Shown: positions 8,806 through 62,100, counted from the first letter of the stretch. The stretch is DNA of 64,000 bases from Macrostomum lignano (GCA_002269645.1 NIVC01001221.1:124001-188000), one strand, 5' to 3'. The notes: generated by a model from the sequence alone, not told the origin. Numbers and translations: made by a program.

Positions 8806-11551
8806 CCCGCTGCAAAATATGGTTGTTTCTTTGGCTGATTCCAAGCGGAAACACCGATGTTTCCACGCACAAATCCCGCCCACACACAAAACCCTCCCAA
8901 TGAGACGATTCTAGGTGCAAGAAACTGCCAAAAAACCCGCCCAGTAAGAAACCACCCAAAAAACCACCAAGAGAAGAGTTTCCAACCGAAAAAACCACCG
9001 AACACTTGGCGGTTTCTTTCAGAGATTCCAGCCATGTTGAAAATTGGAATCAACGAAGGAACCCGCCAAAAACTTTGGCGGGTTCTCACAAAGCTTTGGA
9101 TGATTCCTGCAGAATCCACCATTTACTCTCTTTCAGGAAACCGCTAAGAGAATCGAATTTCATTTCATTTTTAGAGGCCATTCATTTGCTTGAAATGTTT
9201 ATATGAAATATATGCTTATATGAAATAAATGCTTAGCTATATGAAATATATTTAGCAACTATGATTCAACTACATTTTCTTACTGTACTGCTTATCAAAA
9301 GTTGTACTTCTTTTCCTCCATTTATTTATGCTGCACAATTGAGACAACCTTTAGGCTCATTTTCGTTATTTTTGTAATGAAATTAATCTTTACTGATGAC
9401 CAGTTTGCAAGCAAGTTACTCCATACCATATAGTCAATTTTAGGCGTAGTTTCTCGACTTGTTTTTTTATTCTGGCTGATGTAATGCAGTACATTTACAC
9501 GTCATAGATGGTCCCCAAAAATTTCAGCTAAATGAGCGACCGAGTGCCGAGTTGGTTCGTTTTGTAATTCGAAAATTTTTTGAATAAAAAGCATGCAAAG
9601 TAAACTTTAAACACGAATTCATTAAACTACATGTTGACTTTTCCCGGCAGATCCTCGTCAAAAAACTCCATCGGTTATTCCATCCGAAGATTTCATACAT
9701 TCACTGTGAGAGGAGAGAAGTGAGAGGAGAGGGAAGAGAGGAAGGAGAGAGTAAAGAGGGGCGAGAGAAGCGGGAGGAGAGAGTAGAGGTGAGAAGAGGG
9801 AGAGATGAAATGAGAGGAGAGAGTAGATAGGAGAAAGTAGAGAAGTGATAGAGGAGAGTAGAAGTGGGAGAGTAGAGAGATGAGAGAGGAGACAGGAGAG
9901 ATTATAGAGTGGAGATAAGCGAGCAGAGAGAAGAGATGAAAGAGAGATAGAGATGGAGAGAGATGGAGCTATGAAAGAGGAGAAAGGAAAGAAGAGAGAG
10001 CAGAGACGAAATATGTGAGAGTAGACAGAACAGAGGAGATAGAAGAGAAATATGTGAGAGTAGACAGAACAGAGGAGATAGAAGAGAAATATGTGAGAGT
10101 AGACAGAACAGAGGAGATAGAAGAGAAATATGTGAGAGTAGACAGAACAGAGGAGATAGAAGAGAAATATGTGAGAGTAGACAGAACAGAGGAGATAGAA
10201 GAGAAATATGTGAGAGTAGACAGAACAGAGGAGATAGAAGAGAAATATGTGAGAGTAGACAGAACAGAGGAGATAGAAGAGAAATATGTGAGAGTAGACA
10301 GAACAGAGGAGATAGAAGAGAAATATGTGAGAGTAGACAGAACAGAGGAGATAGAAGAGAAATATGTGAGAGTAGACAGAACAGAGGAGATAGAAGAGAA
10401 ATATGTGAGAGCAGACAGAACAGAGGAGATAGAAGAGAAATATGTGAGAGTAGACAGAACAGAGGAGATAGAAGAGAAATATGTGAGAGTAGACAGAACA
10501 GAGGAGATAGAAGAGAAATATGTGAGAGTAGACAGAACAGAGGAGATACGCTCGTAGAAGAGAAATATGTGAGAGTAGACAGAACAGAGGAGATAGAAGA
10601 GAAATATGTGAGAGTAGACAGAACAGAGGAGATAGAAGAGAAATATGTGAGAGCAGACAGAACAGAGGAGATAGAAGAGAAATATGTGAGAGCAGACAGA
10701 ACAGAGGAGATAGAAGAGAAATATGTGAGAGTAGACAGAACAGAGGAGATAGAAGAGAAATATGTGAGAGCAGACAGAACAGAGGAGATAGAAAAGAAAT
10801 ATGTGAGAGTAGACAGAACAGAGGAGATAGAAGAGAAATATGTGAGAGCAGAAAGGAGAGGCAATGGGAGAGAGAAGTGGAGTGAGGAGAGAGGATACAA
10901 GAAGAAGTAGAATCGAGAGGATGTATTGCATTATGGATGTAGTGTTGACTATGTATTGCATTTACGCACGAGTTTTTTTATGCCATCTGCTATAATCACA
11001 TGTTACGTTCCCTTTTTTACAACTTTGGTTTGGTCCACTAAAAATATAATATACTATTTTAATAATACAAAGTGCACTATATTTTTGGCTTTAGCCTTGG
11101 AAAATGTGAACTCATGTTTTTTTACTGTTTGCACTTATTTGGATCATATTAAATGCTTCAGGCTACCCTTGACTGTTGTAGTCTTTGTAATCAATGATTA
11201 TTGAAGTAGGTGTTTATTACAGATAAAGTACACTTCTATGTTACTCGTATTTTAACAATAAATTTCAACATTAACATGCATATTAAAATAGGGTTAACGC
11301 GATAATTGTGCTCTACATAGGATCCGCAGAATAATTAGATTTCAATCAGTAGCTTCTTCGGCAGTTTCTGAAAAGAAATCCACCCAGGAAACATCCAAGT
11401 GTTGGGTGGGTTATTTGGCGGATTCCGCACATTTTATGCGTTACATCCAGCCGATTGTCGGCAGTTTCCTCTACACTACAGAGGTAGGCCTTCTTTGGCT
11501 GGTTTTCGCAGTAAAATTCCCGCCCAAAAAACCGCCATATTTTGCAGAGGG
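8806..11551. mobile_element. Nested non-autonomous TIR element with CCC termini (CMC/EnSpm-like), inserted in the right TIR array
   Basis: cccgctgcaaaatatgg at 8806 versus the reverse complement of ccatattttgcagaggg ending at 11551 (16/17 match). The inverted 15-mer array is continuous on both sides. Subterminal regions 8810-9150 and 11350-11550 share a similar degenerate motif composition. Confidence 0.6.
10010..10850. repeat. 39-bp purine-rich minisatellite (agagtagacagaacagaggagatagaagagaaatatgtg)
   Basis: About 21 near-identical units, preceded by a degenerate GA-rich tract at 9705-10000. Confidence 0.97.
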
Positions 11552-11970
11552 CCGGCTGGCAGTTTTCCGGCTGGCAGTTTTCTCGGCTGGCAGTTGTCGG
11601 CTGGCAGTTTTCCGGCTGGCAGTTTTCCGGCTGGCAGTTTTCTCGGCTGGCAGTTTTCTCGGCTGGCATGCAATTGTCGGCTGGCAGTTTTCCGGCTGGC
11701 AGTTTTCCGGCTGGCAGTTTTCTCGGCTGGCATGCAATTGTCGGCTGGCAGTTTTCCGGCTGGCAGTTTTCCGGCTGGCAGTTTTCTCGGCTGGCAGTTT
11801 TCTCGGCTGGCATGCAATTGTCGGCTGGCAGTTGTCGGCTGGCAGTTTTCCGGCTGGCAGTTTTCCGGCTGGCAGTTTTCTCGGCTGGCAGTTTTCTCGG
11901 CTGGCAGTTTTCTCGGCTGGCATGCAATTGTCGGCCGGCAGTTGTCGGCTGGCAGTTTTCCGGCTGGCAG
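11552..11970 (-). repeat. Inverted 14/15-bp array forming the right TIR
   Basis: ggctggcagttttcc units, the reverse complement of the 6945-8035 array. Confidence 0.95.
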
Positions 11971-11983
11971 TTGGGGTGCTCCC

Positions 11984-12678
11984 TGCTCTAACATCATCAC
12001 CAATGCTCTGAAATCACCACCAATGCTCCAAAACCATCAACGATGCTCCAAAATCATCACCGATGCTCCATCAAAATCATCACCGATGCTCCAAAATCAT
12101 CACCAAAGCTCCAAAATCATCACTGATGCTCTATAATCATCTCCGACGCTCCACAATCATCACCGATGCTCCATCAAAATCATCACCGATGCTCCACAAT
12201 CATCACCGATGCTCCATCAAAATCATCACTGATGCTCCAAAATTATCACCGAAGCTCCAAAATCATCACCGAAGCTCCAAAATCATCACTGATGCTCCAC
12301 AATCATCACTGATGCTCTATAATCATCTCCGACGCTCCACAATCATCACTGATGCTTCACAATCATCACTGATGCTCCACAATCATCACTGATGCTCCAC
12401 AATCATCACTGATGCTCCACAATCATCACTGATGCTCCAAAAGCATCACCTATGCTCTAACATCATCACCGATGCTCCATCAAAATCATCACCGATGCTC
12501 CAAAATCATCACCGAAGCTCCAAAATCATCACTGATGCTCCACAATCATCACCGATGCTCTATACACATCACTGATGCTCTATAATCATCTCGGATGCTC
12601 CAAATCATCACTGATGCTCCACAATCATTATCGATGCTCGACAATCATCACCGATGCTCCAAAATCATCACCGATGCA
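11984..12678. repeat. 20-bp minisatellite, right part (more degenerate)
   Basis: aaaatcatcaccgatgctcc units, same family and orientation as 6068-6934. Confidence 0.93.
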
Positions 12679-13342
12679 CTTCGTTTTGAATTTGGGCTTC
12701 TTATTCTCAGCTGCTTGCGAAGCTGTGTTCTGGCTCATGCCATGCGAATGATAAAGCTAAAGGGGTTGCCCTCGCTGGCTCGGGACTTAATGTCTGCCAT
12801 GTATATTTGGTCCATAGACTAAATACCAAGTGCAAGAGATTGCCTTATCTAAAAGGCTCATGAACAACATTGCTGCAGTATTGCACCAAGGACTACTTGA
12901 GTTGTCTTTGTTTTGCACATTTATACATGTCCGTCTACAGCTTGTTAAATCAATTTCAAGTAAAACTTCACCTAAACGAGTGTTTGGATTGCGATGAACG
13001 ATTTTTTGTCAAATTTTTATTGAATATCTGATAAAAGCGTACGTATGAATGTGCTGTAACAGTGTAGATAGCTTCAGATGCAGCTCAATTAAAATTAACT
13101 GCGATCGGAATAGTCTTTTCACGTCGAGGAATTAATTGTGTCAGTTTGAACTTATTATAATAGTTCTAACTCTTCAGTTTTGAAACAGGAATTTAAAAAA
13201 CTACCTTTGGAATGATTTTTTTAAGAAATAAAGCCATTAAAAAGATCAAAGAGAGAAAAACAAAAACACATATAAAGATTTTCTTTGTGCCGTCATGCCA
13301 ACAACATCGCACCCGCAGCTCCGGCTCCGCTACGAACACAAT

Positions 13343-15470
13343 TTAAACAGTTCCGTAGATCTTTTTCTCGAGTTCAAAGTCCGACTCTGTCTCCGATTTC
13401 ACTTCGACTCCAGCAAGCGGCTCAATCTCCGTGTCGGTTTTGATAATGTCAAACCAGCGCACAAAATCGGCACCCAGACACTCCTTGAACCAGGTGTCAG
13501 CCTTGAACGCTTCCAGGGCTTCGGGGAAGCTATGCGGCAGGTCTTTAGTAGTATCCACCTGGTCAAGCCGGAGATCGCGCTGGATTCCATCCAGTCCAGC
13601 GAAGAGAGTCGCCGCCAGAGCCAGGTAAGGATTGCAGGCGCTGCTCACGATGCGACTCTCGACGCGGCTGGTCTCCTTGCGCTGCGTCTGCAGCCGGAAC
13701 GTCGTCATTCTGTTGTCAACGCCGTAGTCGCACTTGGTTGGCGCCCAAGGCGTGTGCAGCCGTCGGTAACAGTTCACCGTTGGCGAGCTGACCGCAGTCA
13801 GTGCTCGGGCGTGGTGAAGCAGCCCAGACAGGAACTGCTCACCTGTTGTGCTCAACTGCTTGCTGCTACTGTCGGCCGCGTGAAAAATGTTTGTTAAGCG
13901 ATTCCCGCTGGTCCACAGCGACAAGTTCAAGTGCCAGCCGTTGCCCGTCTGTCCAGGCAGACGCTTCGTCATGAATGAGGCCTCAAAGTCATGTCGACGC
14001 GCTGTCTCCTTGGCAATCAGCTTGAATCGGAAGCCTTCATCGACAGACTCGATGCCCCACTGAGGCAGCAGGTTAACCTCAACCTGACCGGAGCCGTACT
14101 CGCTGTGCATGACCTCCACGTGTAGTCCCGCTGCGCTACAGCTACGCTCCAGATCGGTGAGGAACGGCTCGACTTCGCTGAACACGAAGGCGTTGCCGTA
14201 CTGCACCGGCTGCCAAGCCGGCTGACCGTCCTTCAGCTTGAAGAGTCGAAACTCGATCTCGTAGGTGGCGAGAACTTCCAATCCGATGTTGTTCATTTGT
14301 TCGATGGCTTGCTTGCAGATGTACCGCGTGTCGGTCGGGTATGGTTCCCCAGTGCCTGCTACGAACATGTTGCAAAGCACCTGTTGGAAAATTTAGCACG
14401 GAGTTATTTTATGAATCAGATATCATGTTAAACTTAAAATGAAATTAATCTTTTATTTGTTTAATAATCTTTTTTATTAGTTTCTTTGTCCAACAGCACA
14501 CAATAAAAGGTCCAGTTCCGCGATCCGCACATGCACGCGGATTAAACAGTTCCATAGATTCCTTAAATTCCGAGTTGATGAGACAAATCACAAGGAGAGA
14601 GTGCCTTAATGTTGTCAACACACAATGCAAATTCAGCAGTGGTGACACCAATGCTTTGTCCCCCACCCCACCTTGTGAACCGCTATGGAAATCAATACTT
14701 TTGCTTTAGGGTGCCAACATTTAACGCTTTCGGCGCCAAAATGAGTTCCTGCCTGAGGCGCCAAAACTGAGTAGCCACCAACAAGACACGGGCCTACCTG
14801 AACAAGTGGCGCCACCAACAAGCCACGGGCCTACCTGAACAAGTGGCGCCACCAACAAGACACGGGCCTACCTGAACAAGTGGCGCCACCAACAAGACAC
14901 GGGCCTACCTGAACAAGTGGCGCCACCAACAAGACACGGGCCTACCTGAACAAGTGGCGCCACCAACAAGACACGGGCCTACCTGAACAAGTGGCGCCAC
15001 CAACAAGACACGGGCCTACCTGAACAAGTGGCGCCACCAACAAGACACGGGCCTACCTGAACAAGTGGCGCCACCAACAAGACACGGGCCCACCTGAACA
15101 AGTAGCGCCACTAAGACATGGGCCTACCTAAACAAGTGTAGTGGAGAGCATATGGAGAGAGTACTGTATATATTCAGTTATCAAATGAAGCAGGTATACT
15201 CACATCGCCGTACTGGGCCCCCGATTGAGCCGTGTAAGTTCGCAGCGTGCTCCAGTCGGCCTTGACGATGGCGTTGCCGCAGCCGGAGTCGGCAAGCATC
15301 CGCGTCACTGCGGTACCCTGACAGGCCATGCCCAGCATGCCCTGGAACATGGCTAGGCCGTGCTGTTCGAACGCTTTAAACGCTCGCGGCGTCAGAATCT
15401 TCGACCGTGCGCAGCCGTTGATGTCGGGAAAGAGCAGCCTCAGGTACTCGACTCCGTTAAGTTGATTCAT
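13343..15470 (-). CDS. Glutamine synthetase type I-like / lengsin-family protein, 434 aa, 2 exons (15470-15204, 14380-13343)
   Basis: Phase-0 intron with donor gtgagt and acceptor ttccaacag. GS catalytic-domain motifs: YEIEF, HSEYGSGQVEVN, FMTK...GNGWHLNLSL, NCYRRL, YGVDNR, RVESR...NPYLALAA. The N-terminal beta-grasp segment is LFPDINGCARSK. Confidence 0.92.
14775..15135. repeat. 37-bp minisatellite in the GS-like intron (ccaccaacaagacacgggcctacctgaacaagtggcg)
   Basis: About 9.5 units with period 37 (starts at 14775 and 14812). Confidence 0.95.
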
Positions 15471-16437
15471 GCTTTTGTTCTTGCTTAGATTTTGCAGTTT
15501 GTGAATACTTGGGTCTCGCGGTTACCGAATCCAACTGGTTCGCGCTGTTCTGCCTCTTGTGCTTGACTGGCACTAGATTATTTTATTTATGCTGGCTTGT
15601 GTGCACACAAATACAACCATTTCTTCCAGTGCTAGCTAATCTCTGCTCTACACACGTATGCTCAATTGTACACCGTGTACTCGGCCTACACGCATTTATA
15701 TGAGACTTCTACGCGCAACCAGAATTTTTACGAGCGTACGATGCAATCTACAGTGAATCGAGGCATGCAGTGAGCTTCTCAGCTTTATGAATGAGCATGC
15801 CGCGCATTTCAGGCCAAATTGAAGCAAGCTGTTATCTTAAGTGTACGTTTTATTCGTAGTGGTCATAATAAAAAGCGGCCGGTCGATAGACCAACTGCCT
15901 TGCAAATCAAATTTCAAATGGGTTTGAACTAACCTTATATTTATTTACGAAATCAGAACACAGATTGGCTCTCCTGAAACAAAGATTCGTGGACCTGACA
16001 CACAGCTTGGCTCTCCTGACACACAGCTTGGTTCTACTGACACACAGCTGGGGAGAGCTGACACAACTTTAAGGATCTGACACATAGCTTTGCGAACCTG
16101 ACACACGTTTTGGCAAAAATATTGATGCCTCTGTCCCGTGATAAATTAATTTATACTTGAAAATTCTGAATACATTGCGCATTTTATCTATTGAATAAAT
16201 TCAATCTACAATTCGCTGTTTGCAAAACATTTAAGAATCAATATAGCAAAATACATGTGAAAGAACAAAGAGCAGTAGTAAAACAAGAACACGAGAGTAG
16301 TACATCATAAAATTCTATGCTAAAGCTTAAAAAATGATTTCGTAAAATAGAACGTTTTGTGCCATGTCTCTTGTTCATCATACACCTGAATAACCAGTGT
16401 TTACCTCATCTCAAATTCTCCCTGTCTCACCATTAGT

Positions 16438-17511: not shown

Positions 17512-19584
17512 CTTGACCAACTTGAAATTATAATTCTTGTCGATTAGCAATAGCCAGCCAAGGCGAAAGTGAAAGCATCTGTTCTGGGCCATTGATATTA
17601 TATCATTATACAACGCATGCGCCCATGCTAAAATAGGCATGATCACTCTTCAAATCTTACAAAAAATTAGCTACAAAAACAGGCCGAGCTGTATGTACCG
17701 AGAGGTGAAGTTCGATCTTATCAACAGCAAAAAACATTGCCGTTCGTTTAATTCGGTGTCTGCTGCAGTCTTCGATAATGACTGCATCACTTAATAAAGC
17801 CAGTTTTAGGGCGTAGCCAGGGTTTTCTATTATCAGGTAGAATACTCATACAGAGACAGGAATGCATTACCAATGATGAGCCAATTATGGAAAGGATTAT
17901 TGTAATTCTTTTAGAGGGGTCATTTGAACAATAGCGGCCAACAGGAACTTTGCCCAGTTAATAGTACATCCGACTTCGAACGTTTTATTCGCTAGCTAAA
18001 CCTTGAGGAATTTCACCTCAGCTGCTTCGGGTACTGCAGTATATACTAAGGTCAGGGCTAGATTGCTGCTAAATATAGGGGTTAGGCTGTACTTTTTTAC
18101 AGATGGGAAGTAATTCACCTTTTCCGGTCTGAGGCAGGATGCATGCACTTCCAGTCACTTTGCCAATTCATCTCTCTCTCTCTCTCTCTCTCTGTGTGGG
18201 GGCCTGTGAAAACGCAGAAAGTCGAACATTATGGGAGGCTGCGGCGGCCGAAAAGTGCAGCGCCATGAAGCATGCAACCTGAGCGCAGCGCCATCACGTG
18301 CATTTGACGAACTTCTATCGTAACTATGGGTAGACGGGTTGGAACGCTGCAGTTAGTGGTCGGTACCTGTGTAAGGGAAGATAAAGTGGCGCATCAGCTA
18401 TAAAAAGTACATTGAATTGCACACGTATACGCCCTTCCTTTCGATGCATGGCAACTCCTATAGTGGGTTGGTTTCTATGGGAAGCTCATCGTCTGGAATG
18501 ATGACGACTGCAGGGCTGATGTACGTCATGACTGGGGGGTTTCTATGGGGTTATAGGATGTCTTCGCGTGAATTGTAACGACTTAAAATTTTAATGCTTA
18601 AAATACTTTTGATTTTATAGTTTCCGCAGTATTTGGTTTCATTAGTATGTACATTAGGATGTTAAGCCCTGAAGACATGCATGTATACTGTACATGTGGG
18701 ACACGCCAATGAAGAGGCAACGCAGGGGGACAGGGGTAGGTAGGGGTTCATCTCAAGAGACAGTTGAGGCCACCGCACGACACCAAACATTGTTTGTGGT
18801 CCGCTCCATTTAAAATACTTGCGTGCGCGGTACGCCACTCTGCTAACCAATATACTCGTAATGCAAAATTGACTCTAACACCTGCGTCCCGCTTCCACCT
18901 TACAATGTTGTTAAATAAGTATAACAAATAAAGGAGTCTAAACTTGTCTTCTATAATCTAAAATCCCGAATTCAGAGCCTATAAATATTCCAGGGGCGCC
19001 GAAAGCATTGATTATGGGCATCGAAATAGTGTCTTTAATTTTTTACTGCTTCCCACGGTGAAACGATTTTGCAACATTTTCCAAGCGATGTATGCACAAA
19101 GTAGTTCTATTTGGTGTCAATTTCTTTGCGCAATAAGCAGGACAACTTTGCCAGTAAAAGAAGTTACAATACTTCGTCCTTGGTAAAGTGTTTTCGCCGC
19201 ATAGACAGATACAGGCGCTCAAATTTATATATAAACGGAGCTCTACATGCAAAAAAACATGCAGGCAGTACATGTATGTGTACAACTGAAGCAACTTTGA
19301 ATTTGAATGAATTCTTTTTTAGTCTCAGAAGAAACCTTCCTTGATCGTGCTATAAATATTTTATCGGCCTGATTTATCCTGAAATTTCTGCTGTGCAATT
19401 TGGACAGCACACGCGATTGCCTTGTCGAAAAGGGCGTCGCCACTGCGGGGGGGGACAGGGGGGACATGTCCCTCCAGTAAAAGCTATATGGGAGAGACAT
19501 GCCAATGCTTTGTACCCCCCACCCCACCTTTTGTTGATCTGTTATAGAAGTCAATAATTTTGCTTCAGGCCAACAAAACATAGC

Positions 19585-22784: not shown

Positions 22785-22910
22785 TATCCCAGTTAATGCT
22801 GGCACTATAATGCTGGCACTGCTAGCACAATGGGATTTTATAGCTGGGTGAACATAAGCAATGCAGAGTTGTATGTCAGGAATCAAACCCCAACCTTCAA
22901 GATATGAAGT
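22785..22910 (-). mobile_element. Decayed copy of the SINE seen at 60760-60944
   Basis: caattatcccagttaatgctggca and agctgggtgaac match 60778-60830. Confidence 0.5.
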
Positions 22911-27030: not shown

Positions 27031-27954
27031 GACATCAAGGTTCATATCTAATGTACGAGTAGATTATTAAATAGTTTTTCAAGTCTATCTTTCAGTCTAT
27101 GTATAGATATCCTTCCTAGGAAAATTTGCCAATCTAGTAGATTATCTTGAAGAAATTGACGTAGGCAAATTTAAAATAGCACGTTTCTTCTTTGTTTTAA
27201 GTCGCATAATTTGTTTTAATTTTAGCCTGAGAAATATTAGTTCATTGCTGGTCCTGTTCATTTGTTGCCGTTTTTTGTCCCTTTTTCTTAATGCCAGGCA
27301 CTCACCTGCTGCTATGCTCCGGCGCTGATTATTTGCTTTTGTTTGCTTTGCTTTTCCTGTTTCTGCTATAAACTGCTTTTAGTACATTCGTCTGTCTGAC
27401 CGACTTTCTGCACTTTTTAACCTAGTTTTGTGTTTTTTTGTCCACGTGAAGATGGCACAATTTTAAGCAATAATACTCGCTTCTGTCTACTTACTGTAAG
27501 TAAGTAGTATAAGTAGCGCATTCAGTCTATTATTAAGTTCATGGAATTTGCGTGTAATTAGCAAAATACTGTTTTTTTTCTCTCAAATTAGTTCATTTTG
27601 TTGATACAAAACAACTATAAAGTAACTAAATATTCATTTTATCATATAATGAAATTATATAATGCATTATATATGTCTACACCTGCCTGTTGTTTTCACC
27701 TTTCGTAATTTGCGTTTTGTTAATTCGACTCGTAATTATGTTTATTAATATTTATTACTGACGCAAATACAATTTTGAGCAGCTGTAAGCTGGTCTCTAA
27801 TAACTATTGCGCTGCGCAATATTGGGTAGTTGAAATCAGTTTGCGGCTGTCTTGATTGCAGCTTTTAGTTATTTAATTTTTCCTAGCCTGAATTGCACTT
27901 TTACAGTAGGATTTTCTTAGTTTGGCTTGTTGAAAAGGCTGCTGAAAACGGTGG

Positions 27955-28810: not shown

Positions 28811-31800
28811 ATGTCTTCAATCGATAGTGATGACCTTCGTCGATGGCTGCCCGACTTTCCATCTGGACCGCTGGAGCCGTTTCGCAGGCGGGCCTCCTTC
28901 GACTGGAGACGGATGGCCCGTCTGCTGTTTGGAGAGGACGGATTGCGGGTTCGGGTGAGACTGCCCGCGGCGATGACAATTCTACTGGACTCTCACCCTT
29001 AGATTCTCTTGGACTCTCACCCTGAGATTCTCTTGGACTCTCACCCCGAGATTATCTTGGGACTATAACCCTTAGATTTTCTTAGACTTTCACCCTTAGA
29101 TTCTCTTGGACTCTCACCCTGGGGTTCTCTCGGACTCTCACCCTGAGATTCTCTCGGACTCTCACCCTGGGATTCTCTTGGACTCTCACCCTGAGGTTCT
29201 CTCGGACTCTCACCCTGGGATTCTCTTGGACTCTCACCCTGAGGTTCTCTTGGACTCTCACCCTGAGATTCTCTTGGACTCTCACCCCGAGATTATCTTG
29301 GGACTATAACCCTGAGATTCTCTTGGGACTAATAACCCTTAGATTTTCTTAGACTCTCACCCTTAGATTCTCTTGGACTCTCACCCTGGGGTTCTCTCGG
29401 ACTCTCACCCTGGGATTCTCTTGGACTCTCACCCTGAGGTTCTCTTGGACTCTCACCCTGAGATTCTCTTGGACTCTCACCCTGAGGTTCTCTTGGACTC
29501 TCACCCTGGGATTCTCTTGGACTGTCACCCTGAGATTCTCTTGGACTCTCACCCTCAGATTCTCTTGGCCTCGCATTCTCTGATTCTCTTGGAACTTTCT
29601 TGTCCTGAGATTATATTCGACTTTAAGATTCTTCTTGTCGATCTTTTTAGACTTTCACCTTTCTAATAGGTTGGCCTCACCCTGAGATACTTGACAGTAG
29701 ACATTAGACTCTTACATTTTCTCTGCAGTTGACAGTGTGGCGCACAATGGAGTCCGACCCCGTGTTCGCGCACAGTCAGCGGCCCCTAGCCCTTCAAGAG
29801 GTGCGCAAGCGAACCTACCTGCAGTGCAAGCGACTATTTGAGTACACTTTTTTGACCGACGAAGATCTGCTGTCCAATCCCCAGCTGTTGAGTCACTTCA
29901 ACCAGGCCGTTCTCATGTACGATAAGTCTCTGCTAGCCAAGTACTCCCTCACTGTCACCATGTTTGGCTCCAGCGTCATGTCTATGGGCAAGAGTCACCA
30001 GGACTATTTTGAGCGAGCAAGGAATTTCGAGCTGTTCGGTTGTTTCGCTCTGACCGAACTGTCGCACGGTAGCAATGCTAGGGCGATGCGAACTGAAGCT
30101 CGATACGATCCTCAGACTAAAGAGTTTGTGCTCAACACTCCCGATTTGGAGGCTATGAAGATTTGGGTTGGTGAGTTTAGTGTAATCGATTTCTAAGAAT
30201 CAGTCACATGCCTACCTACCTAGATAGATAATGACAAACCATTCTTCATCTTAAGACTTCTTGAAATTTAGTTGCAGTTTCGATAGGATCATAAATTTGT
30301 CTCTGTAAGGGTTTTGTAGTGATGTTGCTGATTTCAAATTTGAGCTTCATTTTTTGTAGCTTAAAGCCAACAACCGGGGCATGGGGAATGGAAGGTTTTA
30401 GGGTGGGGAGAATCTTTATGGGGATTCATTTTACGTACCTAAACTTCAATAGAGGCGCATGGAGGTCTATTGTAGATTAGGTTCATAAATTCGGAGACTG
30501 AGGGGGGGTCCTAGGGTGGGAAAAACTATAATCCTATAAAAACTAATTGATACCAGCAGCTGTAGTTACCTTCAGAATGGAGACAACGCAGATTAGTCGA
30601 AATAAGTATAGGTAAACACTAGCAATCAGCGCCCCCCGGTTGGGGAGCCAAAAAATGCAGTACAATTTGTTTTAATAAACTACATGTAGCGTCTCTTTGC
30701 AATATACCTCAGCAGTCCCTATTAAGCCTTGACATGTCAGCAATTTTCCCCACAGGCCTCAACATATCAACTCCCCCCTTGACATCTCAGCGATGCCCTC
30801 CATAAGCCTTGAAATCTTGAAAAATCTCTTCAACTTTCTAACCCTAACCCTAAACATAACCCTAAAGCATTAACATTTCAGTAATTCTCTCCAAGAGTCA
30901 TTATAGCACTACAGCATTATAGCGATTCCCTACAAGCCTCGACATCGTAGGAATTTCCAAATGAATCTTTTAACTTCGACATGACGCTTCTTTTATTTTT
31001 TACATGACGCCTTGTCATGTTTCTAAAATATTTACACTTGAAAGGTATGATTCTAAAAAAAGTTCAATTTTTAAACATACAAGTTTTCAAAACTGCTTCC
31101 GAAGCTCCTGTTACCCCTGAATGTAATTTTTGCAGTTTTTTGCTTTATTATCATTTTGGACAGCCTCTAAGACTGTGGCGCAAATTTCAGAAAAATCAGA
31201 AAATTGGAAGTATTTTACTTACCTAAAGTTCAAGAAGTCCTATTCTTAGTATATAGGACTAGTTGATTTAGCCCCCTTTGGGGGCTAGTTGACTATGTAG
31301 TCGCCAAGCTCCTCCAGGGCCTGCTTTACATGTACACACTGTTATGCCTTCTCCTCAATGAAGGGGATTAGCTCGACAAGCCACAAGAGTAAATTTTCGT
31401 GCACGAGCACCCGCACGGTCTTTGGCGATTAGAGTCTGGCTTCGAGGTTTTATATACTTTCGATACATATCGGTTTTTCAAAATCCCTACTGCTTACTGC
31501 TGTATTGCCCGCAACGCAGGCAACCTGGGCCAGTCAGCTACTCACGCTCTGGTCTATGCTCAACTAATCACGCCCGACGGTTCGAACCACGGACTTCACG
31601 CGTTCGCCGTGCCAGTCAGAAGCCCGAGCACAATGCTGCCCTATCCTGGAGTTATTGTCGGAGATATGGGCGCCAAAATCGGCTTCAACGGAGTCGACAA
31701 CGGATTTGTGGCCTTCAACGGCTATCGCATTGACAAGTCCTGTCTGCTCAACCGGACCGGAGACGTCACGGACTCCGGCGAGTACGTCAGTCCTTATAGG

Positions 31801-39629: not shown

Positions 39630-40510
39630 TCAAATTATTCGGTAATCTATAGTTCCGGTTCTTCAGTAATCTATACTTCAGGTACTTCAGTAACCTATAC
39701 TTCAGATCATTCAGTAATCTACACTTCAGATCATTCAGTAATCTATACTTCAGGATCATCAGTAATCTACACTTCAGATCATTCAGTAATCTATACTTCA
39801 GGATCATTCAGTAATCTATACTTCAGGATCATCAGTAATCTACACTTCAGATCATTCAGTAATCTATACTTCAGATCATTCAGTAATCTATACTTCAGAT
39901 AATTCAGTAATCTACACTTCAGATCATTCAGTAATCTACACTTCAGATCATTCAGTAATCTACACTTCAGATCATTCAGTAATCTACACTTCAGATCATT
40001 CAGTAATCTATACTTCAGATCATTCAGTAATCTACACTTCAGATCATTCAGTAATCTATACTTCAGATCATTCAGTAATCTATACTTCAGGTTCTTCAGC
40101 AATCTATACTTCAGGTTCTTCAATAATCTATACTTCCGGTTCTTCAGTAATCTATACTTCCGGTTCTTCAGTAATCTATACTTCAGGTTCTTCAGTAATC
40201 TATACTTCGGTTCTTCAGTAATCTATACTTCAGGTTCTTTAGTAATCTATACTTCCGGTTCTTCAGTAATCTATACTTCCGGTTCTTCTGTAATCTACAC
40301 TTCAGATCATTCAGTAATCTATACTTCAGATCATTCAGTAATCTATACTTCCGGTTCTTCAGTAATCTATACTTCAGGTTCTTCAGTAATCTATACTTCC
40401 GGTTCTTCAGTAATCTACACTTCAGATCATTCAGTAATCCATACTTCAGGATCATTCAGTAATCTTCACTTCAGATCATTCAGTACTCGTAATTTATACT
40501 TCAGGTCCTT
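39630..40510. repeat. 24-bp minisatellite (ttcagtaatctatacttcagatca)
   Basis: About 36 units. Confidence 0.96.
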
Positions 40511-46140: not shown

Positions 46141-46869
46141 CTCTTTTTATCCTCGCGAACGTCAGGCACCAGAAAATTGCAGCCTCGGTGTCGTCCGGCA
46201 CGCAGAGCACGACAATCTAGAAACTAACAAATAACATGTTTTGCAAGTTAAAGCAAATGTGCATAAGACCAGTCGATGTGTTAACACAAGTAGTCATATC
46301 TTGCGGATATATAAACATGCACGTGCTTAGTTTGCATTTCGTAACATGGAATTTTATACGTTCGTAGCTGAATAAAAGCCACTTAATACATATAAGCTGC
46401 CGATTCGCGTGTACGCACTACTTAGGCCCAGCATGATAAGACGGACATTATATACGAGTTGCCAAGTTTGTGCCAGAGTAAATGGTGCATTTGCTAACTG
46501 AATCTACCAGTAATTACGAGCTACAGCGAATCAACTTTAACTTTGCTATTCTTTATCTCGGCTTTCCACTTGCTGATTGCACGGATTTTTATTCGGTCGG
46601 TATGACTATACCTGCCTATACCAGCCCTTAGCCTTGTTTGAGTAACTGCATGTCCTGCTCTCTGATTCGGTAAGTTAAACCACTGTCGTCTGTAACCAGT
46701 CTTTTAGTGTAAGCCTGTAAAGCCTTCACATAGCTTTTCAAAGTTTTCCAAAAGCACGCAGTTTAGAATCTATAGAACTAAATCTAAAAAGTTTCTTAAA
46801 CAACTAATTTTTCTCTATATTACTAGAGATGTATTGTATGTATAGTATAAGTGTGGGATTTTCATTGTT

Positions 46870-49800
46870 TTATCAGACTCATCACTCCGAGACTCTTTTC
46901 TATCAGCCTTGTCACTCCCAGAATCTTCTTTTCTATCAGACTCTTCACTCCAGGAATCTTTTCTCTATCAGACTCGTCACTCCAGGAATATCCCTATCAG
47001 CCTTGTCACTCCAGGAATCTCTTCTCTATCAGACTCTTCACTCAAGAAATATCTCTATCAGACTCGTCACTCCAGGAATATCTTCTCTATCAGCCTTGTC
47101 ACTCCAAGAATCTTCTCTATCAGCCTCGTCACTCCAAGAATCTTCTCTATCAGACTCGTCACTCCAAGAATCTCTTCTCTATCAGACTCGTCACTCCAGG
47201 AATCTTCTCTATCAGACTCGTCACTCCAGGAATCTTCTCTATCAGACTCTTCACTCCAGGAATCTCTTCTCTATCAGACTCGTCACTCCAAGAATCTTCT
47301 CTATCAGACTCGTCACTCCAAGAATCTTCTCTATCAGACTCGTCACTCCAGGAATCTCTTCTCTATCAGACTCATCACTCCCGGAATCTTCTCTATCAGA
47401 CTCGCCACTCAAGAATCTTCTCTATCAGACTCTTGACTCCAGGAATCTCTTCTCTATCAGACTCGTCACTTCAAGAATCTACTCTATCAGACTCGCCACT
47501 CAAGAATCTTCTCTATCAGACTCGTCACTCCAGGAATCTCTTCTCTATCAGATTCGTCATTCCAAGAATCTTCTCTATCAGACTCGTCACTCCAAGAATC
47601 TTCTCTATCAGACTCGTCACTCCAGGAATCTCTTCTCTATCAGACTCGTCACTCCAAGAATCTTCTCTATCAGACTCGCCACTCAAGAATCTTCTCTATC
47701 AGACTCGTCACTCCAGGAATCTCTTCTCTATCAGACTCGTAACTCCAGGAATATCTTCTCTATCAGACTCGTCACTCCAAGAATCTTCTCTATCAGACTC
47801 GTCACTCCAGGAATCTCTTCTCTATCAGACTCGTCACTCCAAGAATCTTCTCTATCAGACTCGCCACTCAAGAATCTTCTCTATCAGACTCGTCACTCCA
47901 GGAATCTCTTCTCTATCAGACTCGTCACTCCAGGAATCTCTTCTCTATCAGACTCGTCACTCCAAGAATCTCTTCTCTATCAGACTCGTCACTCCAAGAA
48001 TCTTCTCTATCAGACTCGTCACTCCAAGAATCTTCTCTATCAGCCTCGTCACTCCAAGAATCTTCTCTATCAGCCTCGTCACTCCAAGAATACGCTCGTA
48101 TTCTCTATCAGACTCGTCACTCCAAGAATCTCTTCTCTATCAGATTCGTCACTCCAAGAATCTTCTCTATCAGACTCGTCACTCCAAGAATCTTCTCTAT
48201 CAGACTCGTCACTCCAGGAATCTCTTCTCTATCAGACTCGTCACTCCAAGAATCTTCTCTATCAGACTCGCCACTCAAGAATCTTCTCTATCAGACTCGT
48301 CACTCCAGGAATCTCTTCTCTATCAGACTCGTAACTCCAGGAATCTCTTCTCTATCAGACTCGTCACTCCAAGAATCTTCTCTATCAGACTCGTCACTCC
48401 AGGAATCTCTTCTCTATCAGACTCGTCACTCCAAGAATCTTCTCTATCAGACTCGCCACTCAAGAATCTTCTCTACCAGACTCGTCACTCCAGGAATCTC
48501 TTCTCTATCAGACTCGTCACTCCAGGAATCTCTTCTCTATCAGACTCGTCACTCCAAGAATCTTCTCTATCAGACTCGCCACTCAAGAATCTTCTCTACC
48601 AGACTCGTCACTCCAGGAATCTCTTCTCTATCAGACTCGTCACTCCAGGAATCTCTTCTCTATCAGACTCGTCACTCCAAGAATCTCTTCTCTATCAGAC
48701 TCGTCACTCCAAGAATCTTCTCTATCAGACTCGCCACTCCAAGAATCTTCTCTATCAGCCTCGTCACTCCAAGAATCTTCTCTATCAGCCTCGTCACTCC
48801 AAGAATCTTCTCTATCAGACTCGTCACTCCAAGAATCTTCTCTATCAGACTCGTCACTCCAAGAATCTCTTCTCTATCAGACTCGTCACTCCAAGAATCT
48901 CTTCTCTATCAGACTCGTCACTCCAAGAATCTTCTCTATCAGACTCGTCACTCCAAGAATCTTCTCTATCAGACTCGTCACTCCAAGAATCTCTTCTCTA
49001 TCAGCCTCGTCACTCCAAGAATCTCTTCTCTATCAGACTCGTCTCTCCAAGAATCTTCTCTATCAGACTCGTCACTCCAGGAATCTTCTCTATCAGACTC
49101 GTCACTCCAAGAATCTTCTCTATCAGCCTCGTCACTCCAAGAATCTTCTCTATCAGACTCGTCACTCCAAGAATCTTCTCTATCAGCCTCGTCACTCCAA
49201 GAATACGCTCGTATTCTCTATCAGACTCGTCACTCCAAGAATCTTCTCTATCAGACTCGTCACTCCAAGAATCTCTTCTCTATCAGACTCGTCACTCCAA
49301 GAATCTCTTCTCTATCAGACTCGTCACTCCAAGAATCTTCTCTATCAGCCTCGTCACTCCAAGAATCTTCTCTATCAGACTCGTCACTCCAAGAATCTCT
49401 TCTCTATCAGCCTCGTCACTCCAAGAATCTCTTCTCTATCAGACTCGTCTCTCCAAGAATCTTCTCTATCAGACTCGTCACTCCAAGAATCTTCTCTATC
49501 AGACTCGTCACTCCAAGAATCTTCTCTATCAGCCTCGTCACTCCAAGAATCTTCTCTATCAGCCTCGTCACTCCAAGAATCTTCTCTATCAGCCTCGTCA
49601 CTCCAAGAATACGCTCGTATTCTCTATCAGACTCGTCACTCCAAGAATCTTCTCTATCAGACTCGTCACTCCAAGAATCTCTTCTCTATCAGACTCGTCA
49701 CTCCAAGAATCTCTTCTCTATCAGACTCGTCACTCCAAGAATCTTCTCTATCAGCCTCGTCACTCCAAGAATCTTCTCTATCAGACTCGTCACTCCAAGA

Positions 49801-50285: not shown

Positions 50286-51661
50286 GAGTCTAAGTGGGAT
50301 CCATGTTTCTAAATTAAACAATTGTCTGCTTCCAAAGTGGCTCTAAAGAGTCATCAAGCTCTACAAAGAGCTGCGCTTGCTTCCTATTTTGAAGCTTTCA
50401 ATTTGGGAGTCTTTATCCCGAGGATGAATGTCAGAATTGAATCCCCTGCATGGGAGCCCCCTAGGTCGGCAACGTGGACTCGGCTGGAGTTTTTTTTTTT
50501 CACAGACCGAGTCCGCAACTTGCAGGAGCTGTTCGCGGATACGAGCTGATGATGCACATTTGGGAAGGGAGGGGAAGAAGGAAGGAATAGGAGAGAGGGG
50601 AGAGAGGGGAGGAGCGGGTTCGTGCGGCTTGGCTCATGGTGGCCTAGAAGCAGATCCTGGAGAGGAAAATATTCCCCATTCTCAGCCTGTTTTCTAAAAA
50701 GCAGAGATTTTAGTTTTTCGAACTAGACATAAGACATTTAATGTGTGGAGAACCTTTGTTTCGTTACTCCAAAATGCAGATAATTTATCGGTTTTTCGTA
50801 TGAGAAAGCAACTCCCGGTTCTAGTTCTAGGCCTCCATGCCTGGCACTATATTTGGTTGGTCAGCCGAGTGCACATTAGAACACAAAACTCGAAAGGCCG
50901 CACGAGAAATGAATCGAGGGTGTGTAAATCCTAGCGGAACGGGAGAGAGGTGGGGATGGGGCAGAAAGAACTGAAATTAGGCCTTGGGATTTGGGCACCA
51001 CCACTGCAGCATGGAGCACTAGAGGCCCCAAGCATTCAGCTAGGTTTAAGTAGATGGTTTGCTTCAACTTATTATTTGCTTTCTTTCTATTAAACTGTGT
51101 TGACGTGTTAGCCTACCGTAGACAAATGAAAATATTCACTGAATTTTTTGACTTGACAACCGAGAACTGACTCGCTGGGCTCGTTCCTAGTAAGCCATGG
51201 CTGCGGGACTGACTGACGGGGAAGAAAGGGCGGAAGAGGCACAGTGTACAGCACCCCCCCCCCCTGGGCGGTTGGACAGATATCCACCACGAGGGACGGG
51301 CCTGGGCAGCTCCTGTAATGTTTTATCCTACACTCATCTCTTGTCCTCACTTTCCCAAAGCTGACCATAAAGTCTGACTGTTGAGTTTAGAGTTTTTTTC
51401 AATTTCGATTTATTATAACTAGTGGACTAAATAAAACCGACCATGCAGGATTTGATGTAATCTGTCAGGCCCTGTCTGTCTGTCTGTCCGCTCTGCTTTC
51501 GGATTCGCTAAGTTATAACTGCTATATTGTAGATCGTATACAACTCAAAATACACTAGCTACACAGTACAGAAAAGTCTATCTTGAAAAAAAACGCAGAG
51601 CCACACCGCCAACGCAGCGGATATACTCAGCTAGTGACTCACCTCACAGCGGCTGCAGCAA

Positions 51662-56413
<4,752 letters not shown>

Positions 56414-57109
56414 CTTCTCTGCGGCTGACGTTGAAGGTAATTGCTGAGTCTCTCCGATGCACCTTTGAGCTCTCTGACACTTCTAATACCTGTTAAGTTC
56501 TTGACACGCCTGTAGACTCTCTGACACACCTGCAGACTCTCTGACACACCTGCAGACTCTCTGACACACCTGCAGACTCTCTGACACACCTGTTGAGTCC
56601 CTGACACACTTATGACACACCTGACACACTTCCGGTGTTAGCCAGAACTGGCGTGACTTAGCGAAACTCGCTGCAATCTGATGCAATCTCTAGGGTTATC
56701 GAATAAATTAACATTTCCAATAACTGCTGTCGATTTTTATTTAGACAGACTACACTGTATGTAGAAAATTAGAAAATAGTGTCGCATCATTATGTAGATA
56801 TGTTAGCTGAAACTGCTGCTTATCCCATACCAGACGAATTGCTTGTCATACGAGTATCATATTTACAATAATTTTTTTACAAATTTGTCCACGGAATCTA
56901 ATATATTATCCGCGTATTAAATCATACTAACTAGTACATCTTTTGTTAAGTTTAAACAAAACAAAACTTTTTTTTGCAATCGGTTTGAAATTTGATCTTT
57001 TATTTGCCATTTTGATAATAATTCAGATATTTAGTGCATGAAATTCGATGCTTTCAATGAATTTTTAGTCTATGTACCAAAGTTCTCAACTTGACTGACA
57101 AGAGCAGAG

Positions 57110-58130
57110 ATGCTGAGATGCCAAGGCTCACGGGGGAATTGCTGAGATGCCAAGTCTAACAGGGGGGAATTGCTGAGATGCCAAGTCTAACAGGGGGGAA
57201 TCGCTGAGATGCCAAGTCTCACAAGGGAGAATCGCTAAGATGCCAATGCTCACGGGGAATTGCTGAGATGCCAATGCTCACGAGGGGAATTGCTGAGATG
57301 CCAAGTCTCACAGGGGGAAATTGCTGAGATAGCAATGCTCACGGGGAATTGCTGAGATGCTAAGTCTTACAGTGGGAATCGCTGAGATGCCAAGTCTCAC
57401 AGGGGGGAATTGCTGAGATACCAATGCTCACGGGGAATTGCTGAGATGCTAAGTCTTACAGTGGGAATCGCTGAGATGCCAAGTCTCACAGGGGGGAATT
57501 GCTGAGATACCAATGCTCACGGGGAATTGCTGAGATGCTAAGTCTTACAGTTGGAATCGCTGAGATGCCAAGTCTCACAGGGGGGAATTGCTCAGATACC
57601 AATGCTCACGGGGAATTGCTGAGATGCTAAGTCTTACAGTGGGAATCGCTGAGATGCCAAGTCTCACAGGGGGGAATTGCTGAGATACCAATGCTCACGG
57701 GGAATTGCTGAGATGCTAAGTCTTACAGTGGGAATCGCTGAGATGCCAAGTCTCACAGGGGGGAATTGCTCAGATACCAATGCTCACGGGGAATTGCTGA
57801 GATGCTAAGTCTTACAGTGGGAATCGCTGAGATGCCAAGTCTCACAGGGGGGAATTGCTGAGATACCAATGCTCACGGGGAATCGCTGAGATGCCAAGTC
57901 TCACAGGGGGAATTGCTGAGATACCAATGCTCACGGGGAATCGCTGAGATGCCAAGTCTCACAGGGGGAATTGCTGAGATGCTAAGTCTCACAGGGGGGA
58001 ATTGCTGAGATGCCAATGCTCACGGGGGGGAATTGCTGAGATGCCAATGCTCACGGGGGGGAATTGCTGAGATGCCAATGCTCACGGGGGGGAATTGCTG
58101 AGATACCAATGCTCACGGGGGTAATTGCCG
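57110..58130. repeat. 28-31-bp G-rich minisatellite (gctgagatgccaagtctcacagggggaatt) with higher-order structure
   Basis: Three unit types cycle with period 89. Confidence 0.95.
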
Positions 58131-59162
58131 GGACAAAGTTTGCTTAAGCAGTCGTTGTGCGCACTACACTTTAATTAAATTATTGTAACAAAGGTTCACC
58201 TGAAATGCATTCACTTTTTAAACTCCTACTGAAGTGCCAAATGAGTAAAGTGTATTTATAATTCATGAATGCAGCACATTCATTTTTTCATAGGGACACT
58301 CAACGATACGAGCTACTAAATAAATACTTACAGTAAAAAGTGTTTGAAAATGTATTAAGGATAGAATAAAAATCCTGGTTCAGAATTCGCCTCTCGAATT
58401 AGGTGGAATACATTGGATTGAAATAAGAATTTTCTTTAACTGAGATGCTGACTGTAAGATTGGAATTGAAGTAGGAGAATTTATACCTGAAATGCTCAAA
58501 TTTTGGGTCTTCATGGGCCTTCAAGCAAAAGCAAAGTATAAAAAGCCTAAATGTGTCGCTACCTATTTGAGAAGCAATTGAGACTCGAATTCGCAGAAAC
58601 TCGATGCCGTGAAAATAATGACCGAGTGGCCTCGTGCGACTCTCTAATAGTTGCACCATCGAGAAAGATGGACTGACTATTAGTTTACACCATTTCCAGC
58701 TAAATAATTCTGTTGCTGAACAGCGTGGATCTTCATTTTGGGTGAGCCAAGCAATTGACTTGCCTATACCGTTAGCAAGCACAGGCTCCAGCTCTGTAGT
58801 TTTGCATTTTGAGCACACCGCCTTTGGACATGGAGACGGACAGGCAGATACATGAGCACAGACTGGGTGAGTGAGCGTCTAAGGCTACTGAACTCTGACA
58901 GATGGTCGGTCAGAGAACGAATATTTTAAGCATTCTCGCATTGGCACTGCTTGAGATCGAAAAGTGTACAGGCAATCTTTGAACCTAACCGAAAATCTAT
59001 CGTAAACCCAACCTAACCCTGGAGCCAGCAAGCCTACGCTCTCGCATGTATTTTGCACAATTTTTTCCACCTTAAAACAATTTTTGCTTCAAAACGAGCG
59101 CTAACATTAGGAATCCATTGCAGAGTTCAAGTTTCGTAAATTACCCGTCGCCTAGATGCGAC

Positions 59163-62100
59163 TCATGAAGGACTGTCACTGACGCCAGTACGGCACAGGC
59201 AAAACTTTCGCAGGTGAGGCGCGACCTCAGTGACGCAGTGAGCCTGACTGCCGTACCGGTTGATGCGGGAGGCCTCCGAAGTGGAGGACAGCAGCAGCAG
59301 CGGACTGCCGAAACGCGATCGCTGCAGGCCGAACTGCACCGACGCCTCAAATAGGCCTCCGTTCGGCTCTGTGACGAGGCGGAGCGTCAGGTAGCCGGCA
59401 GCGAGCAGCGCCGAGTTCTCCGCGTTGTAGGCCACGTAGCGCCAGCTGACGTGGCGCTCGCGGCGAGCCAGATCCTCGCTTGCCTGCGGCGTTGCAGAGG
59501 GGGGGGAGTAGCTCGGGGGTTGTTCGAATCTGTGCTCGTCCATTTCGGGCTGGTGCACAAAAAATATGTCTCAGGAAGACTCGAGCGGTCACTCACCAAG
59601 CTGACCTCGGCCTCCGTGACATTCCCCAGCTGCAGCTCCTGGCACAGGTGTCGGAACGGCTCAGTGGCCGAGTTCATCTGGTTCACTGCAAACCGAGCGG
59701 CTCTCACGGCCAGCTCGTTCGAGCTCGGCTCTTGAATCTTCTTCAGCCGCAGACACGAGCACCAGTGAGTCGGAATGCCCGCATCTGAGCAGCTGCGAGT
59801 CTCCGGAACGGCCTCATCGATCAGCGAGTACGATGTGAGGCTGGCGCCACCCGCTGCGAGCGTGGTAGAGTCTCTGAGTCCAGATAAGTTCAACAGAGTC
59901 CTGTGAATGTCGACAGGCGTTGTGAGTCTATTTGCGTTGGTCCTCAGCGTCTCTGCCGCATCTTTCTTGCGGCTCATCAACTGCCTGCTCAGCGCGATGC
60001 TCATGAGCGGTAGCGACTCCTCCAGCTTGCCCTGCATGGAGTTCCTCAGCGGTCCGTGCCGCTGGCCGTGGTCCGACATCAGAATGATGCTGGTGTTGCT
60101 GCTGAGGTTGGCGGCCTCGAACCAATCCAGGAACTTGACGAGCTCAGCGTCCATGGGAGACAGGTCTTGGTTCTCGTGCGACAAAGAGCTGAAAAAGGTG
60201 AAGGCGAACTTGGGCCTGTCCGGGTACAAGGTGAAGAGGTCCTTGACGGCCGAGAGCATTCTGGCGCTGGCGATCTCGTCTCCGATGCAGATGGCGTTGG
60301 TCTGCAGCCGCTCCTGCTGCAGCAGCGCCGGTCTCAGGTAGAAATCCGTGGGCTGGCGTCTGAAGCCGTGAAACCGCAGCTGGAAAGTGCCTGAAAATTC
60401 GCGATGTTAAATTCCATGTCAAGACCAGCAGCGGAGCAAGTGAAATAACTCAATCCTGACTAACTCACTAGTAACAGAATGAGGACTTCGCTGCAAGGTG
60501 AAACGAGTGGTAAGCAAAGCTCAACCAATAATTATTAGGCAAAAGTCACGCCAGAAGCGAACAGTGGGTAGGTCAAGAAATGTCTCTGCAAGTCGCTAAT
60601 TACGACTCAAGTCGCTCCCCACTGAAGTCCAGGGGAGTTCAAGGACCGAATGGCTTGTACAGAGTACAGAGGATCGACTGAAGGACTAAGCCAAGAACTT
60701 CTACTCGGAGACAGGGAGTTCTAGAGCAGCTGCAGAGTAAAGTTTTGTGGTTTGCCCTTTAGGAACGGGGGTCCCTCAATTACTCCCAGCTAATGCTGGC
60801 ATTCATTTTGCAGCTGGGTGAACTGACGCCATGCTGAGTTAAGTGCCTTGCTCGAGGACACAAATTGTTCCGAGTGGGTCGAAAATCGAACCCCCGATCT
60901 TCGAGTCGTGAGTCCGACGCTCCAACCACTAGGCTACCACCCCCATTCAGAAAGACAGAAATGGTGAATAAATTAGGAAGTCTGAGTATCATAGATAGAA
61001 TTCACTGATAGATATAGCATGCAGTTTTGTGACTAAATACACTAGGTACATACATTTTACGCTTTTGTGACTGCGCGCTTATTCCAATGCGGTCCAAGGC
61101 ACGTTGCAATATTTAGGCGCGAGCTTCTTTCTCTGCGCAAAACGCTACCTAAAATCTAACCTAGGGGAGCAAAATTGCAGTCAACAACTCTAGACGAAAG
61201 AACTCTAAAATTTTACAAGAAAGTCACAGGTCACTGTTCTTGACATGCATTTAGAGTCCAATTCATCGATGCCCAGTTTTGGTGATTTGATAACGTTTAA
61301 ATAATGCCAATGCCTTAAAGTATCCTTGAATACGCTCGTAGGAGGAATCGAGATACCTCAGCCAGTGAACTCTCAACGACCCCTTTAGCTTAATACCGTG
61401 CATGGACATTATTAAATAAATCGCACGGCAAAATAGTGTCGTGGGATTCACTTCAATGAGTACCAACCCCAAGTTCACCAAATTTGAGAACGTATCTTCT
61501 CTACTCTTTACTTGTTCAAGGCGAATGCTTCAGAACTCAAGCTGACAACTCAAAAAACGCGCTCTCACCGTATGCAGACTGCTCCTCCCCGTACAGAGTG
61601 ACGAAGCCCCGGTCCCGCAGGTCCTGGAAGATCCACCGAAGCGAGTCGTCCAGAAATCGAGCTCCAGCGAAGCCCTTCCGAGACTCGGGCATGTCGGCCT
61701 CCCGAATCCCCGTCAGGATGGGCAGCAGAGCGGCGGGCGTACCGTCTCCCATGATGTTGTACTGCTGCAGGGTGATGGCGCCAAGGCGGTCCTGCATGAT
61801 GCGGCTGGCTCGGGGCAGCGACCGCAAGCTCTCGAGTCGGGACAGCGAGTCCAGGCCCAGCATGATGACGTTGCCGAGCTCCGAGCTGTCGGTCGGCGAC
61901 CCCCCGCGACTGCCGGCTGCAGACGACGTCGCTCGCTTCACTCCGTAGTAGACGGAGCTGTGGCGGCTGGTGCGGTCTGGTGACTGGCAGGAAGCTCGGA
62001 ATCCCAGACTGGGCAGCTCGTCTCCGCTGCGGAGCGGCCTGGCGCTGCCGAACTCGCTCGACTGGTCGTCCAGCCGCACGACGGGCTCCGCGGTGCAGTT

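Follow-up and report, generated by a model that had tools for sequence, protein, structure and literature searches.

The window analysed here, a 64,000-nucleotide stretch of Macrostomum lignano contig NIVC01001221.1 (assembly GCA_002269645.1, Mlig_3_7), carries short scars in which two TA dinucleotides enclose the fixed bases CGAG, CGAGC or CGAGCG. These scars are probably the excision footprints of a Minos-like family of Tc1/mariner DNA transposons in this flatworm, a reading to which we assign a probability of about 0.8. Minos is a Tc1-like element of Drosophila hydei with long inverted repeats (about 255 bp) that start CGAGCC. The abundance and ages of the scars point to roughly a hundred thousand movements of such an element, the latest of them very recent.

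In the window, dinucleotide shuffles predict 0.03 occurrences of the 10-mer TACGCTCGTA or its reverse complement and 0.85 of the 8-mer TACTCGTA/TACGAGTA; each word is found six times, a count that none of 100 shuffles reaches for either. The 6-nt scars are located at 10547-10556 (TA-CGCTCG-TA, plus strand) in a 39-bp minisatellite, at 15729-15738 (minus strand, TACGAGCGTA on the plus strand) in unique sequence, at 48091-48100, 49204-49213 and 49610-49619 (all plus strand) in a 30-bp satellite, and at 61331-61340 (plus strand) in an intron segment of the second of two inverted copies, A and B, of a DUF229/sulfatase-like gene, to which copy A has no counterpart sequence. The three satellite scars lie in identical runs of 30-bp units; the copies at 49204 and 49610, 406 bp apart and with identical flanking units, arose by higher-order repeat amplification, and the trio is thus a single event multiplied with the repeat. 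Four independent 10-mer events therefore remain, in agreement with the minimum of four put forward in an earlier note on this DNA. The 4-nt scars are located at 11242-11249 (TA-CTCG-TA, plus strand), 18853-18860 (plus strand, common to the paralogous locus at L001:4621), 27054-27061 (minus strand, TACGAGTA on the plus strand, directly beyond a 33-bp array), 40484-40491 (plus strand, within the final units of a 24-bp minisatellite), 53696-53703 (minus strand, TACGAGTA on the plus strand, in an intron of DUF229 copy A) and 56849-56856 (minus strand, downstream of DUF229 copy A). Those at 11242, 27054 and 56849 are word matches, and no paralogue control was found within the window for these three or for 61331.

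A third class, the 5-nt scar TACGAGCTA (TA-CGAGC-TA), came to light on tabulating the sequence that follows TACGAG; it occurs at 46515-46523 and 58307-58315 (both plus strand) and belongs to a class that is enriched in independent loci. The earlier note had given all 12 coordinates of the other two classes correctly (six 10-mer and six 8-mer sites), and these sites are real, but it had overlooked the 5-nt class. A candidate decayed 6-nt scar, TACGAaCGTA with one mismatch (46357-46366, minus strand), is weak and may be a chance match. Scars are present in both orientations, and their flanking contexts in the window all differ, with the exception of the amplified satellite trio. Minisatellite arrays occupy about 24-27 kb of the window; in its unique sequence alone the excess is modest, with five 8-mers against 0.6 expected and two 10-mers against 0.026, and about 0.6-0.85 of the six 8-mer sites in the window is attributable to chance. 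When all TA-N4-TA and TA-N6-TA words are ranked and array-unit words are put aside, both scar words stand at the top, except for TATATATA and TACATGTA.

The excess extends beyond the window, as the earlier note had proposed to check. Searches with the proteins of a P-like transposon, described below, yielded eight unrelated 21-kb loci of M. lignano, one near-duplicate and later a further locus, L012; outside these, locus L004 is the window itself (100% identical to window 3343-25470). The independent test set consists of the eight unrelated loci with transposon copies masked, 143,012 bp in total. In this set, TACGAGTA occurs 17 times against 1.5 expected (p = 8e-13), TACGAGCGTA five times against 0.06 (p = 7e-9), and TACGAGCTA 11 times against 0.49 (p = 7e-12), one of these 11 sites lying inside the P-like transposon and two being copies of one event. 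The specificity of the words is evident from TA-flanked controls of the same composition, which average 1.45, 0.62 and 0 against 17, 11 and 5 for the 4-, 5- and 6-nt scar words. TACAGTA shows no significant enrichment (18 against 13.9). When TACGAG sites were first tabulated, 31 of 48 continued with TA, CTA or CGTA. Among 48 scars with distinct flanks, 23 are 4-nt, 15 are 5-nt and 10 are 6-nt, so that the 4-nt class is the largest, as expected for the main excision product of a Minos-type element. Scars occur about once per 4-5 kb, which, extrapolated to the 764-Mb genome, corresponds to roughly 10^5 scars; the heavy past cut-and-paste traffic that had been proposed from the window was, if anything, understated.

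The TA-X-TA structure results from insertion at a single TA, as seen in five clean controls with net gains of 6 or 8 bp. At 10547, 20 adjoining 39-bp units read GATAGAAGA and the scarred unit reads GATACGCTCGTAGAAGA, a gain of 8 bp at the TA that is the only foreign insertion in its array. At 40484, the adjoining units carry CAGTAAT (TTCAGTAATCT) and the scarred unit carries CAGTACTCGTAAT (TTCAGTACTCGTAATTT), a gain of 6 bp. At 53696, GTAATTACGAGTAGTGAG of DUF229 copy A is aligned to GTAATTAGCGAC of copy B, and the aligned segments (GTAATTACGAGTAGTGAGTTGCCGAGAC against GTAAT------TAGCGACTTGCAGAGAC) differ by 6 bp at the TA. The three sites that had been advanced as internal controls thus all hold, through neighbouring units or a paralogous gene copy. 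The remaining two lie outside the window. At L011:12358, inside one copy of the P-like transposon, the sequence is CTACTACGAGCGTATGTATC, against CTACTATGTATC in four other copies, with 8 bp gained at the TA, and L005:980 reads GTGTGTACGAGTAAGTAGG against GTGTGTAAGTAGG in the 99.6%-identical locus L006, a scarred against an empty TA with a difference of 6 bp. Empty and scarred states are therefore both seen at 53696, L011:12358 and L005:980, and no filled state occurs among them. A search for DUF229 homologues that might mark paralogous loci returned one M. lignano match, which was without a contig. Wrap-around alignment of 24,257 bp of array sequence to the consensus units reveals only the three scar events as foreign insertions of at least 5 bp, a 16-bp repeat stretch in a 29-bp array and recurrent 3-4-bp subunit variants having been set aside as internal to the units.

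The scars differ in age. Those at 15729 and 18853 are also found in the paralogous locus L001, which is 95-98% identical to the window (about 97.8% around L001:9733); the 15729 scar predates the duplication, since it is also present at L001:9733. The 5-nt scar TACGAGCTA is found in all copies of the P-like transposon, which are 96-99.7% identical. At the young end, the L011:12358 event is younger than the copies of this transposon and the L005:980 event is younger than the split between L005 and L006. The shared old scars and these young events together place the activity of the family from before the segmental duplication (2-5% divergence) to after the 0.4% split, that is, until very recently. 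In 255 kb there are 10 independent intact 10-mers but only six variants with one mismatch, and a part of these variants is expected by chance.

Three of the six one-mismatch variants of TACGAGCGTA are CpG transitions (TACaAGCGTA, TACGAGtGTA and TAtGAGCGTA, located at L011:14289, L011:15634 and L011:1144), which hints at CpG decay of old scars. Scars also occur as twins: at L011:4128-4153, 10 bp separate TACGAGTA from TACTCGTA, both of which follow ACGTCTT(T)CT, and at L003:8400-8441 two copies of TACTCGTA lie 26 bp apart. Such twins could derive from local re-insertion or from a small duplication that contained the scar. The palindrome TACATGTA is enriched as well, with five occurrences in the window against 0.45 expected (at 5685, 19269, 20033, 30681 and 31327) and 10 against 1.0 in the independent loci; a second Tc1-like family, with CA...TG ends and cuts staggered by 2 nt, may have left this word.

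From the three scar words we infer a cleavage geometry and a repair route for the parent element. The element would insert at a TA and duplicate it. Upon excision, the transposase would cleave the 3' ends precisely at the edge of the element and the 5' ends four bases further in, leaving each flank with TA and a 3' overhang of 5'-CGAG-3'. The two overhangs would pair through their outer C:G around a tandem G.A mismatch and be ligated, after which mismatch repair or replication would fix either TA-CGAG-TA or TA-CTCG-TA (+6 bp); such a heteroduplex predicts both forms, and both are seen here. Pairing in a 2-nt register with a two-base fill-in on each strand would instead produce TA-CGAGCG-TA or TA-CGCTCG-TA (+8 bp). 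This is the equivalent of 'one full plus one trimmed overhang', the origin that the earlier note had assigned to the 6-nt scar, and it is plausible. The simplest reading of TA-CGAGC-TA (+7 bp) predicts an element with C at its fifth position, like Minos, and an occasional inner cut at +5.

Several observations weigh against a Minos-like parent with these properties. The 5-nt word CGAGC is unobtainable from two 4-nt overhangs in any register, and a 3-nt register would yield CGAGG, a class without enrichment in the 143-kb set (1 against 0.31 expected); the full 8-nt join TACGAGCTCGTA has zero occurrences in the same set. Around the scars, A/T is weakly preferred and no palindromic target consensus stands out. 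At 48091, which would be a sixth control, the scarred unit is 38 bp long instead of 30 and the neighbours read GAATCTTCTC, so that the target is TC instead of TA; the unit GAATATTCTC, sought as the empty TA form, is absent from the window. The parent itself is absent from the sample despite events younger than 0.4% divergence. A CGAG-ended family with TA-flanked terminal inverted repeats had been proposed as a check, and none was found: pairs of the form TA|CGAG...CTCG|TA occur neither in the window, with one mismatch allowed, nor in the loci, about 290 kb altogether. A Tc1/mariner transposase was not found either by tblastn with approximate SB10, Tc1A and Mos1 queries against the window and 11 loci, the sole match being spurious (45 aa). 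Within the window, both searches agree with the earlier view that no parent is visible there. A general scan for TA-flanked inverted repeats recovered the P-like transposon, a hAT-like element and foldbacks, none of them CGAG-ended, and no recurrent extension of the kind expected from a repeated element end follows TACGAG. The only M. lignano Tc1/mariner family that we found in the literature, DD37E/MS, has CTGGG ends, which rule out its member DD37E/MS-Mali as the parent.

The missing parent is not paradoxical, because a low standing copy number fits high mobility. Scar accumulation along the lineage would equal the insertion rate, and the number of standing copies would equal the insertion rate divided by the excision rate. 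Highly mobile copies numbering from a few hundred to a few thousand would mean about one copy per 0.3-3 Mb. The sample of about 290 kb covers roughly 0.04% of 764 Mb, so small a share that hundreds to a few thousand copies could escape it even after giving rise to 10^5 scars over some millions of generations. Of the assembly, 3.05% consists of DNA transposons (PMC5730564 supplement).

Among other origins, a TA-targeting system that is not Minos-like, whether another Tc1/mariner clade, a different superfamily that duplicates a 2-bp TA, or two to three related families whose slightly different ends or cut positions would separately yield the 4-, 5- and 6-nt classes, is unlikely. It draws on the fact that only four to six terminal bases of the parent are known, on the three discrete scar lengths, of which the 5-nt class misfits one 4-nt stagger, and on the second enriched word TACATGTA, which suggests scars from other families. 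All three classes nevertheless start with TACGAG, favouring one family, and to our knowledge the combination of CGAG termini with a 4-base footprint is found, among characterised Tc1/mariner elements, only in Minos.

Programmed or somatic elimination, in which germline-restricted TA-bounded parents would be cut imprecisely from the soma and a mostly somatic assembly would display scars alone, is very improbable. It would explain why many young scars are accompanied by no parent in about 290 kb, but a highly mobile family of modest copy number accounts for the missing parent too. One scar is amplified in a satellite array and another is copied in every transposon copy, and both situations require germline inheritance of the scar itself; moreover, scarred and empty states coexist in near-identical loci. 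We know of no chromatin diminution in Macrostomum. A metazoan, Tc1/mariner-based analogue of the elimination of internal eliminated sequences in ciliates, with imprecise somatic excision every generation, is hardly to be expected, and an endogenous Minos-like transposase still active in laboratory M. lignano is more likely than this germline-restricted version.

That the scars are an artefact, produced by systematic faults of assembly or polishing or left over from laboratory Minos, is extremely improbable. The HUB1 line was produced by injecting a Minos plasmid, alone or together with transposase mRNA, and Illumina libraries of this line contributed to Mlig_3_7 (PMC5730564). The scar matches the Minos footprint exactly. 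One injection, however, cannot yield about 10^5 sites, and the HUB1 integration was reported as not transposase-mediated (PMC5730564). The scars are also common to paralogues that are 2-5% apart, amplified in arrays and present in all transposon copies, and no known assembler fault adds a specific 6-8-bp word at TA. Chance or composition, through favoured k-mers or dispersed motif parts, can be dismissed almost entirely: the excess is modest in unique window sequence, but it is replicated in the independent loci with p between 1e-8 and 1e-12, all flanks differ, the controls show actual insertions, and the scars are the sole foreign insertions in the arrays.

A Minos-like origin of the scars would imply that a model flatworm harbours a highly mobile cut-and-paste element that is probably active to this day. 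With roughly 10^5 footprints, TA-site insertions of 6, 7 or 8 bp would form a sizeable and recognisable mutation class, and if the element is active in laboratory animals, such 6-8-bp insertions would be a major ongoing mutational process. Minos-based transgenesis in M. lignano failed to work as intended (PMC5730564); an endogenous transposase acting on Minos-type ends would be a possible tool and also a possible confounder of Minos constructs. As rare-event markers, the footprints lend themselves to the dating of duplications, satellite amplification and transposon bursts, a use made of them here to a limited extent. With thousands of natural footprints catalogued, it would become possible to see how defined 3'-overhang breaks are joined in the flatworm germline, the 5-nt product included.

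The P-like transposon used for sampling belongs to the P superfamily (THAP9-like). It is about 3.5 kb long at L001:947-4425, where it adjoins a lengsin paralogue, and is absent at the corresponding window position (about 18991-19171). Its inverted repeat starts with CAGGGACAACTAAAACCCTCGGGAC, its target duplications are 8 bp long and its transposase open reading frame has 630 aa. Copies are also present in L002, L003 and L005-L012, at least 10 in number, and their identity of 96-99.7% indicates recent amplification. The hAT-like element is a 1.56-kb non-autonomous insertion at L006:13914-15473 with inverted repeats CACAGAATATACACAGAATGGCGAATC and an approximately 8-bp duplication (G[C/T]AAATAC); it is absent from the 99.6%-identical L005 and is thus a very recent insertion polymorphism. 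As an L006-specific insertion it was considered as the parent of the scars and ruled out by its CACAGAAT... inverted repeats and its target duplication of about 8 bp. In the window, a lengsin open reading frame of 345 aa (13343-14380, minus strand) is 99% identical to BOX15_Mlig030319g3. The DUF229/sulfatase-like gene occupies 52477-56413 (plus strand) and 59163-62525 (minus strand), with exons that are 95-98% identical between the copies and introns that differ by hundreds of bases and carry different minisatellites. Other features include a 1-kb (GACT)n tract (2629-3637), a 340-bp (CAGA)n tract (55372-55711), a short interstitial, telomere-like TAACCC run (30839-30862) within an acyl-CoA oxidase-like gene region, and a short reverse-transcriptase-like fragment (863-1000, motif ...ALFIDLRKAFDSV...) that leads directly into a 29-bp minisatellite. 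A SPRY open reading frame of the window had no record by exact look-up.

The relevant known element is the Tc1-like Minos, not mariner. Arca et al. in 1997 reportedly found that most Minos footprints consist of four terminal bases between the two copies of the duplicated TA, and are said to have directly cloned a donor site with a central two-base-mismatch heteroduplex. The M. lignano scars resemble those of Minos in the TA target duplication, in inner bases that equal the CGAG...CTCG termini of Minos and in the 6-bp footprint, and the first five bases of Minos, CGAGC, coincide with the 5-nt scar. The differences lie in the host, a flatworm instead of a fly, in the sixth base, which is G in the 6-nt scar and C in Minos, and in the +7 and +8 bp classes, which are common in M. 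lignano (about half of events), unlike in Minos. The relationship is drawn from four to five terminal bases of a parent that is itself absent from the sample. We know of no report of about one such scar per 4-5 kb in a natural genome for Minos or its relatives. In published sequences, the Minos inverted repeat is represented by the amplification primer TACGAGCCCCAACCACTATTAATTC (PMC3680223) and the other end by ...GGGGCTCGTA (PMC5225594), giving ends of TA|CGAGCCCC (PMC3680223; PMC5225594), and excision often leaves a 'characteristic six bp footprint' (PMC3386967; PMC10992017). The TA-duplicating cut-and-paste parent with CGAG...CTCG ends and a 4-nt stagger that the earlier note had proposed matches this published behaviour and is supported by the present data.

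Sleeping Beauty, Tc1/Tc3 and Mos1 share with the scars the pattern of TA, terminal bases and TA after staggered cuts and non-homologous end joining. Their ends are of the CAG.../CA... or mariner type and their staggers are 2-3 nt, resulting in other footprint words. A TA duplication that encloses a few fixed bases is the mark of Tc1/mariner excision repaired by end joining (PMC2874221). The DD37E/MS (Mosquito) family member MS-Mali, with 35 copies in the same assembly and a TA duplication (PMC10379824 supplement), is a Tc1/mariner element like the proposed parent, but its ends are CTGGG. The internal eliminated sequences of Paramecium are likewise TA-bounded, derived from Tc1/mariner elements and removed in very large numbers. 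Excision in ciliates is programmed, somatic and precise, so that a single TA remains; the M. lignano scars, unlike these, keep 6-8 extra bp and are inherited through the germline. In conclusion, the scars probably represent a known kind of mark, Minos-type footprints, in a new host and at an unusual density.

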